From NCBI GenBank assembly GCA_907165135.1, contig OU015569.1, positions 9,672,001-9,736,000 on the forward strand: DNA of 64,000 nucleotides, read 5' to 3'. The translations under genes were made by a program, and so were the position numbers. The number at the start of each line of letters is the position of its first letter. Position 1 is the first letter of the stretch. This DNA is from Oikopleura dioica (Eukaryota; Animalia; Chordata). Below the pieces are notes generated by a model, which was given only the letters and a program-made list of their open reading frames with translations, searched no databases and had not been told where the DNA came from. This document shows, piece by piece, positions 13,640-19,221 of this stretch.

Positions 13640-16600
13640 TCATGTGGTTAGAACTTGACGGGCTTTGTCGATTACATCCTTACAAGTCATTATTTGGAGC
13701 ATTACTTAGATGACATACCTGCAAATTCTTTACAGCGATGGACATAACAAGGATTGAAGCCATCAAGACGTTTCGGTATTCAGAAGCAGTCTTAGTTTAA
13801 GTAATTTTAAAGAGAAAAGATGCCAATGCTATTTTACCTTCGTGCCATCGAAATTGCGAACGTTTGTGATTTGCGAAATGACTTGCTTCATTTCAGCATA
13901 AACCGAACGCTTTTCAAGCTCGACTTCTCTTCTCTCAGCTTCGTCAAGCTTTTCACAAAAAGTGGTCACCTCACCATCAAGCGTTTTGCATTTGAGACCG
14001 ATAGACTTAATTTGCGCGATCAGCGAGTCTGGGCGTGCTAAAGATTATTGTGAGTGCAAACTTTGATTACCTTGCTTCGATAATACCTGTTTCGGCAGAG
14101 TTCCGGAGACTAACAAGTTCCTTCACGACCGCTAATGTGGCCGCCCAGATTGTATCATTCTCTCGATTTAGCGTTCGCGTCTTGTCCAAAACTACATCTT
14201 TTAATGTGAGTTTAGGCATTTCTTCCAGGACAGGTTTAATCGGCGCAGGAACAGGAGGAACTAGATTATATATAAATATGATTTACAATCATTTGATAGT
14301 TTACTTGATGATTTCTTGGAAGATCTTGTGCTAGACGTATCACTGTGTCTTGAAGAGTCAGACTCAACTTTTTCCGAATCGATGGACGGTAAAGGAGAAG
14401 CAGACTCATCCTTCAGTGTCTCATGCGCGTATGGATTGTGGCAAGGCGTTTCCGAAGAAGTGCTACTCGCTGCTGGAGGACCAGAGGATGAGCTAACTTT
14501 TGCTGTTCGCGGTGGCTTCGGAGGCGCTATTCGGGCGGCTACTGCAGACAACGAAGACTCTGATTTTTGACTGGATCGAGATCCTAAGCTCCCAGTGCGA
14601 TTGAGACTGTCTTGACTCTAAAGAAGGGTCTTGATTAAAGATCATTGTTTTGAATAAAAAATTATTTAAACAAACTAAAAGACCCTGCCTGGCGCATTTT
14701 CTCTTCCGCCCACTTCTGATTTTCAGAAGCTTCGGAGCTTTGGTCACTAATCTTTGTCATTATCGTCGAGTCACGTTTTATTTTTTCTTCCAGCTTTTGT
14801 CGAGCTGTGTGCTCGCGCACTTCCTGAAAAATCGTAAAACACACTATGCTTAAAAGATCACAGCAAATAAGTGATAAAATATGCTCAAAGGTTACAAGCA
14901 ATTAGGTGCAATGAATCTAGTAAACTGTTAGTAATCGCCTTATGTTCACAATCAATTTTGTAGACTGACCTTTGGGAGCGATTTAGGAGGAAGAAGAGGA
15001 TTTCTTTGAAGCGGAGTAAAGGGGTCGTCTGGCATAATCTCGGTCTTCGTTTTTAACTCGTTATTCACACTCACGTCAACGGTGAAAACTTGTTTTAAGA
15101 ATGAAAGCCAGTTTACTTAATTCTTTTCTAATTTCACCATAGCTATATACATTTGCCGAGTCCTCTTGATTGAAGGAATCGAGGAGGTAGCCGATCTGCT
15201 CGTGATTCTGTGCCGCTGTCGGTCTCAGGCTGAACTTAGCGTTATCAACCGCTCGGTGTCGTGGGAGCTAATTTATCAAGCTTTGAGAAACTTACTGAGC
15301 CTGATATTTCCAGCACTGCTTCATGATCTTGAAAAGTGACAGTGGACATTTTTCAGGGCGTTCAAGGCGAATCCCATTCTCGATTTGAAGAATCACATCA
15401 TTATTTTTTACCCCTTGAAAGGGCTTCACACCACAGGAAAGTATTTCCCAGGCGCACACTGCGAACATCCAGACATCAGACTGGCTTGTAAATTTACGAT
15501 AATTTATGCTCTCGGGTGCCATCCACTTAATTGGCAGCTTCCCTGTAGTCGCGACGTAGTATGCATCAGTCTCTTTTACTTGCCTTGATAGTCCGAAGCT
15601 GGGTTCAAAACCGAAATTTTAGCTGATTTTTCGATTGATCATGCGTAAGCCGAATAATGTTTCTTTAATTAGATTTTTAACCCTGGCCCAAAATCTCCGA
15701 GTTTGACAGTATGCTCATTAGTAAGCATCAAGTTGCGGGCGGCGATGTCTCGGTGCACAAAGTTCTGCTCTTCAAGGTATTTTAGAGCAGACGACAGCTG
15801 GTAAATGTACTCCAGAAGATGGTGGATGTCCAGAGCATCGGCATTTTGAATCAAGTAGTCTCGGATGCATCCCAGGGCGCAGTACTCCATCACAATCAGG
15901 ATCGGCCAGCCCTAAATAAATAATGGTTGAGGGTCAGGAATACTGTCAGATCAGTACCTTGGTGCAGACACCGATAAGCTGAACAATGTGCTTGTGATTG
16001 AAATGACACATGATTTGCGCTTCTTCAATAAATTTCTGTTTCAAGTCTTGCGAATCTTCCTCAAAATTGGTCTTCTTAACAGCCACCAGAGCGGTGATTC
16101 CATCATTCTTGTAGTTGGCACAGTGCACATTTCCAAACTGGCCCTTTTTAAGGTTAGCATGCAAATTAAAACAGTACAATGCTTGTACTATAAGCATATC
16201 AATGAGGAACATTTTTAGAGGGAGAGGGAAGAAGGCGAAATTCTAGAGAATTTTATTAAATAATCTAACTTTCTTTTGATTAACGCTATTGTATAGAGTG
16301 AGAAGCCAAGTGAGAAACACATGAAACCTCTAGAGATTCTAGGAGCTTCAGGAGATTCAGAGTAACCAAAGTGTAACTAACCGAATGGAAATCGTCCCCG
16401 CAAGAGTAAAAATTAATGAACCGCTCGTTAAAAATCAAAACGGCCACTTTATTCACTGACATTTGCGAAACTGTAAGCAGACAGAATATAACTGCCGCTG
16501 TCAGGAAAAATTTACATCAGAAAGAAAAACAACATGGGACTTGTGAGTGTTGCTCGATAGAGTAGAGAGTTCTAACGGAGTTTTAGATTCGAACTGCAGC

Positions 16601-19221
16601 TGGAGCCAAGGTTGGCAAAGAAATCGGCGAAAAAACTGGTCACGAAGGCCGAGCCGCCGTCGCTGGAGCCGTTCTCGCCTCTAACACTGCTGACAACAAG
16701 CTCATTGATCGACGAAATTAAAACTTCGTTCTCTTCCAAAAATAAATTTATTCTCAACCTATTGACTGTGTTTTCTATGTATATCAAGTTATGCATCATC
16801 AAGTTAGATATATAAATATAAGAGTCGCTCGTTTGAATTCTTGTTCCCATAAAAGTTTCTATCACTGCTCGAAATACTAAAAAAAGGGTAAACCTATTGG
16901 TCGAGCTATTATAAACATAAAATCAGAGCCGATTATTTCATACTCAAAGTCTTATTTCATTTCAATGATACAAGAAGACGCCATTCTAGAGGCATTATTT
17001 TATCATTGCCGGCAAGACGAAAGAAGGGGCGAATAAAACAGTTACAGAGAACTAATAGAATCGATAAATGTCCTATTACTAATAAATTTACAGGAGATAA
17101 CCTAGACTAAGTTGCAACTTCCAAACAAAAAAGTCTTCAAAGAAAACTGTCGTTTTTAGACGAGATATAGAGGTGAGAAGAGTGTCATATTCTAGAGGAT
17201 CTCTTATGGTTGTATCCCCGTAGTTTTGAATAAAGTGAGCAGTAAAGCATAATGAATACAATTATTTTCTGCAATATACCCAGGCTCTTGGTCCCAGGGT
17301 AGTGAATAATACAGTAATAGATGGACTAGTGATCTATCTATAACATGCGGTTGGAAGCAAAATTTTCCGTCATCCGCGCGAAATGACTTTGAAATTTGCA
17401 GAGACACAACATTTTAGGGTAAAAGCAAGCGCACTTCAGCCAAATTCATCATTATCAGATACAAGCTAACATGGGAATCGTAAGTTCTTGAAGAGATAAG
17501 AAGAATACAAAAGATTAAAATTTCTATTTCAGATTCGAGTTGCTGCTGGCGCCAAAGTAGGCAAGGAAATCGGCGAAAAGACCGGTATTTGGAATCATAT
17601 GTGAGCTTCAAATTAATGTTTAATTTTATAGGACACGAAGGCCGTGCCGCTGTTGCCGGAGCCGTTCTCGCTTCCAACACTACCGCTGATGCGAACAAAA
17701 TTATCCCACGAAAGTAATCTTCAAAATACTTCCTTATTTCTCCAACTGTGATTATGGAATAAAAACGAACAAATTGATATTTGGCTAACCGTTCCTGACC
17801 AATTTCTCTGAGGAGCTCAATCTTACTTCTGTCGAGTTCGAAGCTTGGGTCGATAGATTTTTCCTCGACAGGGTCGACAATTGTTGCGTAGTCATCATCT
17901 GATTCGAGGGATTTCGGGATAAAGCGGCTTTCTTAAATCAACTAAAACGTTGTAGGTAGTGTTAAGCATACGTGTAGGAGCAGGGTTCTGTGGCATGTAA
18001 GTTTGAGGAATGTTTGAGAGTGATTCGAAGGAAGGCGCAGGAATGTCCGGAAGCTGACGCGATTTGCTGCTGACAATAACGCTTCCATCGGGTACATCTC
18101 TGCTTCCGCGGACGTACCCGTCAATAAGGTCCGCAAGATTTTCGAGCTCGTCCTCGCTCGAGCAATTTATGTATAGTGGTTCGTTTGAACCTTCAACATA
18201 AAGAAGCAGCTGTAGATTTGGTTCGGTAATCGGCTCAATGCGAACTACATGTTCAAAACGCGCGAGGAGAGTTAAATTGTGGCCAGTTTGCGAGCCATAC
18301 GAAATCTGACACGAGTTTGGTCCAACCATCAGCGTCGTTGCGATGGGAAACGACTCGTGGAGACGGACAGCGTAGTGCTCGCGCTCGAAGCAAAAGAGAT
18401 GCTTCTTGACGAGGTTGAGAAACTCAATAACCGCGTCCGATGAAGCCTTCTCGTCCATTTGCTGAAACTGTTTCACCACTTGCCGCCGGAGATCACGTAG
18501 CTTGAACTGAAGGAGCACTTTTTCAGGAAAAAGCGTTTTGAAAGTATCATCTTCGATCGCACTCGCTATCAACTTCGCGGCCTTGTGATTAAGTTGCGGG
18601 TACTTCCGCCTGATTTCAAGTCCGGCCAATTTTATCGCAAGCTCCGGAGGAACATTGTCAGTTTTTAAATATTCGTACAGCACCTTCAAAGTTGAGTTTT
18701 AGCAAAAAAAAATACGACTCGTGTGCTCTCTTCCTTGATTTCTTAATTAACAACCTGCTTGTACATGAGCGTGAAGATGATCCTATGGCGTTTGTGTACA
18801 TCAACAAAGTCGTCTGGATAATAGCGCACTAGTAGCTCAAGTCGCCCTTGCTGATTCGCCGTGGAGTACGGATTAAACTTTCTCAGAAAGTCCCCATGAG
18901 AGGTTTCCGGATGGATCCAAACTTTGCGTCCATTGCAGTTCCAACAGATTCCGAAAATCCACCCTAATGATTTGCTTAGTGGACGCTCAGAATTTCCGGC
19001 TATTTACCATAAATATTATCGTCTGAAACAGTGCTTCCTTCTTGCCGTTCTCTCTCGAAGTACTGCTTCGTAAGTCTTTCTGTGATCGAAGTGATGACGC
19101 TTCGGAACTTGACCTGATCATCAACAATAACAGTGCGATAACCTTCGACAAGATGGACTATTATCTTGTCGGAGGGCACATCCGAGCCAAGTGCGTTAGT
19201 CGAACTCACCGAGTTTTCCAT
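13640..19221 (-). CDS. PTK2: Focal adhesion kinase (FERM, kinase, Pro-rich, FAT)
   Basis: FERM ([10 protein letters not shown]), Y397-like motif [11 protein letters not shown], kinase ([36 protein letters not shown]), and FAT domain ending [12 protein letters not shown]. Confidence 0.95.
16534..16721 (+). CDS. 47-aa Gly/Ala-rich micropeptide A, nested antisense in a FAK intron
   Basis: Exons 16534-16542 and 16587-16721 (44-nt GT-AG intron) give [47 protein letters not shown]; AATAAA about 20 nt downstream; conserved paralogue nearby. Confidence 0.85.
17471..17717 (+). CDS. 48-aa Gly/Ala-rich micropeptide B, nested antisense in a FAK intron
   Basis: Exons 17471-17479, 17533-17584 and 17632-17717 (GT-AG introns) give [48 protein letters not shown]; AATAAA near 17758. 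Confidence 0.85.

Follow-up and report, generated by a model that had tools for sequence, protein, structure and literature searches.

Animal small open reading frame (smORF) microproteins, such as sarcolamban, myoregulin, DWORF and mitoregulin, are conserved products of fewer than 100 codons that are carried by short dedicated mRNAs, missed by annotation and predicted to be helical; these four are single-pass transmembrane helices. The two genes described here share the former properties. They are located in a stretch of 64,000 nucleotides (nt) from the larvacean Oikopleura dioica (assembly GCA_907165135.1, contig OU015569.1, positions 9,672,001 to 9,736,000 of the forward strand), referred to below as the window, where they lie on the plus strand, antisense within an intron of a FAK gene. 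Gene 1 encodes a product of 47 amino acids (aa) and gene 2 a product of 48 aa. Their open reading frames (ORFs) of fewer than 100 codons sit on their own spliced transcripts and show purifying selection of the coding type, which assigns them to the smORF class. Unlike sarcolamban, myoregulin, DWORF and mitoregulin, however, the two products contain no segment of transmembrane hydrophobicity, and they show no sequence similarity to these proteins. It is very probable that both are real coding genes maintained by selection. We also consider it likely that these two plus-strand microgenes are paralogues, each transcribed on its own, spliced and polyadenylated, and that their leaderless proteins form a family without detectable relatives.

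All positions given here are coordinates of the window, and the exons were read over 16200-18100 and joined by script (Table 1). The two spliced ORFs, their GT-AG introns and their downstream AATAAA signals had been proposed in an initial annotation made from the sequence alone, and all of these elements were reproduced at the same coordinates. Also as reported there, the mechanical ORF list lacks both genes; an intron cuts off their first coding exon, which is only 9 nt long. The AATAAA lies 20 nt after the stop codon in gene 1 and 41 nt after it in gene 2. An upstream in-frame stop is found 15 codons before the ATG of gene 1 and 17 codons before that of gene 2, with no ATG in between. The first intron of gene 2 matches the intron of gene 1 in both position and phase, and one repeat (D4) pairs exon 1 and the donor site of gene 1 with exon 1 of gene 2. 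The second intron of gene 2 interrupts the Gly21 codon and is absent from gene 1 and from the orthologue described below; an intron was thus gained or lost after the duplication. A tblastn search of the whole window returned no further copies beyond gene 1 and gene 2.

Residues 7-37 (31 aa) are identical in the two proteins. In the corresponding 31-codon core, the genes differ at 14 nucleotides, all of which (14/14) occupy third codon positions and are synonymous, with no non-synonymous difference; these recomputed counts are the same as those of the initial annotation. The Nei-Gojobori method gives S = 25.5, N = 67.5, dS = 0.99 and dN = 0 for the core, and the probability that all 14 of the 14 changes would hit synonymous sites is ~1.4e-8. 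Over the first 37 codons, the differences at codon positions 1/2/3 number 2/1/15. The purifying selection claimed earlier is thus borne out by a dN of 0 at a dS of ~1 in the core, with the caveat that this pattern does not pick the strand. A repeat finder applied to gene 1 and gene 2 returned three coding segments and nothing else. Promoters and 3′ untranslated regions (UTRs) of the two genes align no better than shuffled controls, and introns, UTRs and promoters show no paralogue similarity, the repeats being limited to the coding pieces. Because the coding pieces are alike and their surroundings are not, the pair derives from an old duplication that has been kept constant at the protein level.

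The inability of such a pattern to assign the strand is a methodological trap, i.e., synonymous-only divergence is common to the coding frame and one antisense frame, and the strand needs splice evidence. Indeed, one minus-strand frame has its wobble positions at the same nucleotides as the plus frame and is, by construction, equally synonymous in the core, so that the synonymous-only pattern cannot assign the strand. No stop interrupts this minus frame in gene 2 or in the orthologue L001 (94 and 44 aa, respectively), and two stops lie in it in gene 1; when gene 1 is compared with L001, replacements are more numerous in the minus than in the plus frame. The plus strand is fixed by RNA splicing evidence from metatranscriptome contigs.

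Nine marine metatranscriptome runs carry 5-9% of the words from 16400-17800. With the query narrowed to exon 2 and the 3′ UTR of gene 1, the word shares reach 1.00, 0.69, 0.61 and 0.54 in the best four runs and 0.15-0.23 in further runs, and the runs that carry gene 1 transcript words stem from several studies. Contigs X1 (oligo-dT library, 188 nt) and X2 (poly(A) library, 184 nt) were obtained from two of these runs. In X1, 16527-16542 (16 nt) is fused to 16587-16758, the latter with 0 mismatches, which means that exon 1 of gene 1 is joined directly to exon 2 and that the 44-nt intron is gone. In X2, 17536-17583 is joined to 17631-17766 with 47 nt skipped; the junction lies at 17583/17631 (cut +1), and the skipped piece has plus-strand GT..AG ends. 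Both contigs stop at or shortly past the AATAAA. Because the introns are missing from them, X1 and X2 are not genomic DNA, and because the removed introns read GT..AG on the plus strand only, they represent plus-strand transcripts, although the contigs themselves are directionless. A lack of plus-strand spliced transcripts over 16534-17717 had been named in advance as an observation that would speak against the genes; spliced contigs were found for both. The first intron of gene 2 (17480-17532) is outside the RNA coverage, as X2 begins at 17536.

A degenerate-pattern scan of JGI metagenome contigs returned one locus, a diverged orthologue of gene 1 (L001; Ga0115102_10662615, 1496 nt) that aligns with 16386-16758 at 75% DNA identity. 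Its first exon reads ATG-GGA-CTT, as in gene 1, and its intron occupies the same position. This intron measures 41 nt and is unalignable with the 44-nt intron of gene 1 (33% identity in the alignment). In exon 2, identity with gene 1 reaches 87%, 16 of the 18 differences being at third positions, and the differences between the two genes at codon positions 1/2/3 number 0/2/16. The stop codon is kept in place (TGA vs TAA in gene 1), and 46 of the 47 residues are those of gene 1, the sole change being Ala38 to Glu. The comparison gives a dS of 0.61, a dN of 0.015 and a dN/dS of 0.024 (Fisher P = 1.5e-9). The ORF of L001 is intact and preceded by an in-frame stop upstream of its ATG, as in both window genes; of the stops or frameshifts in homologues that the initial annotation had listed as counter-evidence, it has neither.

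Outside the coding region, identity with L001 is 67% upstream vs 33% in the intron, and three conserved upstream blocks (Table 1) may be elements of the promoter or of the 5′ UTR. Identity then falls from 76% to 43% past 16758, where contig X1 ends. No gene 2 counterpart was found in the 870 nt downstream on L001, the contig being short, and no FAK exon in the 445 nt upstream, so synteny with FAK is not established. Positions 922-1443 of L001 hold short tandem arrays with periods of 41, 19, 10 and 20, which have no counterpart in the window. A further trace of the locus is found in the species-labelled run X14, in which three reads match within 16431-16548, where they fit only the upstream block that is conserved and exon 1 with its donor region. 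The loose ends of these reads resemble the upstream region of L001 and then enter a different intron. The reads are unspliced molecules from a third lineage, either gene 1 pre-mRNA, FAK pre-mRNA or DNA.

The antisense nesting inside a FAK intron, proposed by the initial annotation, is supported by the flanking minus-strand exons. The minus-strand ORF 17895-18689 matches FERM_C_FAK1 and FERM_M, and 15946-16212 matches the tyrosine-kinase domain (Pfam). The minus strand over 17795-17908 translates to an acidic Tyr-Ala-Thr-Ile autophosphorylation-type site followed by a kinase start ending in Arg-Glu-Ile-Gly-Gln, and the minus-strand translation from 16143 downward reads Gly-Gln-Phe-Gly-Asn-Val. 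REIGQ and GQFGNV together make up an ordinary glycine loop of a kinase, which places the host intron between these two positions (Table 1). It splits the glycine loop, and its 1651 nt compare with 44-53 nt for the introns of the nested genes. Its ends would be GA..AG, and GA-AG introns are frequent in Oikopleura dioica (PMC7072748). The very short introns of the nested genes, the probable GA..AG intron and the poly(A) libraries from marine plankton all agree with a larvacean source. A GT..AG alternative would use an acceptor near 16187 and add 14 residues to the loop; both microgenes would still be intronic. The poly(A) region of gene 2, where contig X2 ends, lies ~29 nt from the opposite-strand FAK exon. 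Rfam gave no match in the intron, and a scan for bacterial promoters and terminators, irrelevant for a eukaryote, stayed at chance level. The FAK intron also contains three copies of a 24-nt motif whose core is ATTCTAGAG (16228-16251, 16971-16994 and 17177-17200; 71-75% identity), and a TCTAGAG core similar to it is also present near 16330.

Table 1. Features of the two microgenes and of their host intron, in window coordinates.
Feature	Positions	Strand	Description
Gene 1, upstream region	16386-16467	+	Blocks 16386-16398, 16431-16450 and 16457-16467 conserved in L001
Gene 1, coding exon 1	16534-16542	+	Met-Gly-Leu; ATG at 16534 in start context AACATGG
Gene 1, intron	16543-16586	+	44 nt; GT..AG; spliced out in contig X1
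Gene 1, exon 2 (coding)	16587-16721	+	44 codons and stop (16719-16721); matched by X1 with 0 mismatches
Gene 1, 3′ UTR	16722-16758	+	AATAAA at 16741-16746; contig X1 ends at 16758
Gene 2, coding exon 1	17471-17479	+	Met-Gly-Ile; AACATGG context; outside the RNA contigs
Gene 2, intron 1	17480-17532	+	53 nt; GT..AG; predicted from sequence and paralogy
Gene 2, exon 2	17533-17584	+	17536-17583 covered by contig X2
Gene 2, intron 2	17585-17631	+	47 nt; GT..AG; splice seen in contig X2
Gene 2, exon 3 (coding)	17632-17717	+	Includes the stop (17715-17717)
Gene 2, 3′ UTR	17718-17766	+	AATAAA at 17758-17763; contig X2 ends at 17766
FAK host intron	16144-17794	-	1651 nt; probable GA..AG ends, from reading frame and homology

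Elsewhere in the window, four Rfam histone 3′ UTR stem-loops score just over the gathering score, at 34832-34876 (minus strand), 35922-35967 (plus), 44945-44989 (minus) and 61664-61709 (plus), and side matches of the tblastn search mark duplicated segments at ~34.9k/45.1k/60.7k and 35.6k/61.4k. The stem-loops and the duplicated segments suggest a repeated histone gene cluster in the window.

Searches for relatives of the two proteins were consistently negative. A word-index protein search gave no match at E up to 10, and phmmer, run exhaustively with the exon 2 product on 1.84 billion protein representatives, gave none with an E of 0.001 or less; even the protein itself has no annotated copy among them. 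NCBIfam gave no matches, and a PDB sequence profile search returned a chance match only (E = 2.5). A Pfam scan up to E = 10 reported two glycine-zipper families and nothing more: PF05433 (Rick_17kDa_Anti) scored 14.2 and 13.4 bits (E = 0.043 and 0.073) against a gathering cut-off of 24.2, and PF13441 (Gly-zipper_YMGG) scored 12.7 bits for gene 1 against a cut-off of 28.9, gene 2 being unreported. The feature neighbours in the ESM Atlas were Gly-zipper_Omp or Rick_17kDa_Anti clusters with scores of at most 0.86, a range also reached by shuffled proteins. A fold search with the single-helix model found no match in AFDB Swiss-Prot and retrieved arbitrary long helices from the Atlas, which is uninformative, and a literature search on Oikopleura micropeptides or smORFs found no relevant paper in the library consulted. 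The Pfam, NCBIfam, PDB, word-index and phmmer searches therefore agree with the initial annotation in that no known family is recognisable.

The likeness to bacterial glycine-zipper domains (PF05433, PF13441 and PF13488) thus lies in the repeated G-x3-G and in these weak best matches in Pfam and the Atlas. Unlike these domains, the two proteins are eukaryotic and encoded by spliced genes, their scores are below threshold, and they have neither a lipoprotein or signal sequence nor hydrophobic helices; in particular, the two hydrophobic helices that characterise PF05433 are not found, the first zipper being interleaved with Lys and Glu. As neither the score that defines them nor their hydrophobic helices were found when looked for, the family does not belong to the Pfam glycine zippers, and the G-x3-G spacing is the only common feature. 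Of the resemblance originally claimed, the G-x3-G periodicity stands and the bacterial kinship does not, the scores falling 10-16 bits below the Pfam cut-offs. Altogether, the family appears to be lineage-restricted and without detectable relatives; the class of smORF microproteins is known, and this family within it is new.

The proteins contain 15% Gly, 17-21% Ala, eight Lys and Arg residues and 4-6 Asp and Glu residues, with a grand average of hydropathy (GRAVY) of -0.03 to -0.43. Recomputation gave net charges of +3 and +4 when His is left out, as claimed before. The highest 19-residue Kyte-Doolittle mean is 0.3-0.8 (0.33-0.79), far under that of a membrane span or a signal-peptide core, and neither hydropathy nor inspection revealed a transmembrane or signal-like segment. 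The absence of a signal peptide noted earlier is likewise apparent from the N-terminus, which is not hydrophobic and holds R5, K11, K14, E15, E18 and K19 within its first 20 residues. Residues 8-35 follow a four-residue register. Its first stripe is composed of A8/V12/I16/T20/G24/V28/V32, and its second of G9/G13/G17/G21/R25/A29/L33, of which the Gly at 9, 13, 17 and 21 form a G-x3-G-x3-G-x3-G stripe. The third position is variable, and the fourth stripe (K11/E15/K19/E23/A27/A31/S35) places i/i+4 Lys-Glu pairs opposite the Gly stripe. An origin of this register from a 12-nt tandem array was rejected, as Tandem Repeats Finder found nothing. In the AlphaFold2 model made from the single sequence (mean pLDDT 84.5), the 44-aa exon 2 product is helical without a break from residue 4 to residue 43, which suggests that each protein would be a single long alpha-helix.

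Two types of helix offer a comparison for such an architecture. A beta-branched residue beside a Gly at i, i+4 is a classic motif of close helix-helix packing, known as GxxxG or small-xxx-small, which is of the glycophorin-A type and also occurs in soluble helices; V12-G13, I16-G17 and T20-G21 show this spacing. Unlike in glycophorin A, the Gly stripe is set in a charged, soluble context, and the likeness concerns a motif rather than a family, the packing itself being predicted. The helices of alpha-synuclein and the apolipoproteins similarly combine an apolar face of small residues (Ala, Val, Thr and Gly) with a polar face of Lys and Glu, but the register is of 4 residues here vs 11 there, and the likeness is an analogy only.

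These features led to a model in which residues ~7-24 would form a charged amphipathic segment with the register small hydrophobic, Gly, variable and Lys/Glu, so that the G9/G13/G17/G21 stripe would run beside the A8/V12/I16/T20 stripe in the first half of the helix. Residues ~25-35 would provide an apolar patch rich in Ala, Val and Gly, followed by a basic polar tail. The protein would stay intracellular and engage in helix-helix packing via its invariant small-residue face, be it by self-association, by docking to a partner protein or by docking to a membrane surface via the apolar 25-35 patch. In gene 1, the conserved Met-Gly at the start may provide an additional N-myristoyl anchor. This intracellular helix-packing mechanism is put forward as a tentative proposal that may well prove wrong. 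A still more speculative view, which we regard as unlikely, is that of larvacean-restricted, possibly de novo born, leaderless glycine-zipper helical microproteins that would assemble on or within membranes, acting as an oligomeric pore, a curvature-binding coat or an unconventionally released defence peptide.

Other accounts of the two genes differ in how they deal with the same observations. It was suggested in the initial annotation that they may encode membrane-binding or defence peptides; as considered here, these would be secreted or released antimicrobial-like products in which a cationic amphipathic glycine-zipper helix would permeabilise membranes. The net charge of +2 to +4, the ~40% of apolar residues, a length within the antimicrobial-peptide range, the helical moment (0.57 over 11 residues and 0.47 over 18), the long predicted helix and the sub-threshold resemblance to glycine zippers in Pfam and the ESM Atlas are all compatible with such a role. 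However, animal antimicrobial peptides normally carry signal peptides, whereas these proteins are without a hydrophobic N-terminal secretion segment, and fast, diversifying evolution is typical of defence peptides, whereas the 31-aa core is frozen at a dS of ~1. The 4-6 acidic residues, the slightly negative mean hydrophobicity (~-0.15) and the Atlas scores, which stay within the shuffled-sequence range, also argue against it. Because of the missing export signal and the frozen core, the defence reading is rated as improbable, and a secreted role is not supported. Alternatively, the proteins could be N-myristoylated peripheral membrane proteins, in which Gly2 would be acylated, R5, K11 and K14 would provide an electrostatic anchor, and the helix would lie on an endomembrane. 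The PROSITE PS00008 myristoylation pattern has Gly at position 2 and a small or hydroxyl residue at position 6. Met-Gly is present in all three sequences (3/3), encoded by its own 9-nt coding exon, and the Thr6 of gene 1 and L001 fits the pattern; on the other hand, gene 2 has Val6, which is outside it, and a G at +4 is also the plain preferred context of a start codon. This account is rather unlikely.

The remaining two accounts concern the nature and the origin of the genes rather than the role of their products. That the ORFs are incidental to non-coding RNAs with an antisense or regulatory role at the FAK locus, or that the minus strand is the coding one, would agree with the antisense position of the genes in FAK, with the short distance from the 3′ end of gene 2 to the FAK exon, and with the coincident-wobble minus frame that is open in gene 2 and L001 and equally conserved in the core. 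Substitutions confined to third positions nevertheless indicate coding constraint, and start, stop and intron position are kept in 3/3 copies while the flanks and introns of the paralogues are not. For the minus frame, the two stops in gene 1, the excess of replacements between gene 1 and L001 and introns that are removed from the RNA with GT..AG ends on the plus strand only weigh in the same direction, which leaves this account very improbable. The probability is slighter still that the genes were acquired by horizontal transfer from one of the bacterial glycine-zipper families (PF05433, PF13441 or PF13488) and have diverged from it. It would explain why the best Pfam match is Rick_17kDa_Anti (E = 0.04 and 0.07) and why the nearest ESM Atlas clusters are glycine-zipper ones, but the scores remain 10-16 bits short of the curated cut-offs, phmmer, run over mostly prokaryotic proteins, and NCBIfam were both silent, spliceosomal introns are present, and the residues on either side of the zipper are charged, not hydrophobic.

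The preferred reading, i.e., selected plus-strand microgenes whose helical products act within the cell, has points against it as well. Its conservation argument draws on only three sequences (the paralogues and L001), all of a single lineage complex. The coding claim stands at the level of sequence and RNA, translation being predicted, and the localisation and the partner of the protein are likewise predictions. The helix is a single-sequence prediction for which the five AlphaFold2 models span pLDDT values of 60-84. The amphipathicity is moderate, slightly below the surface-seeking boundary of the Eisenberg plot, and the Val6 of gene 2 is outside the PS00008 pattern, which the Thr6 of gene 1 and L001 fits. 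Finally, the species-labelled oligo-dT runs X13 and X14 yielded just 1-3 reads, diverged and with a partial fit, and no read matched the FAK exon; their lineage is evidently too diverged to map, and they are neutral either way.

The two genes add well-supported conserved microprotein genes of a kind that annotation based on ORFs and homology misses. The constraint is unusually strong for an orphan, as 31 residues are frozen while silent sites are near saturation, which argues for a specific molecular interaction. The genes are short, their transcripts are abundant enough to be assembled from ocean metatranscriptomes, and knock-down is practicable in the organism, so that their function is testable. 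The strength of the constraint and the clean RNA support would make the family a good experimental candidate, its function being hypothetical at this stage. If the genes do represent a larvacean-restricted zipper family, their near-invariance would reflect an essential, lineage-specific cell function.

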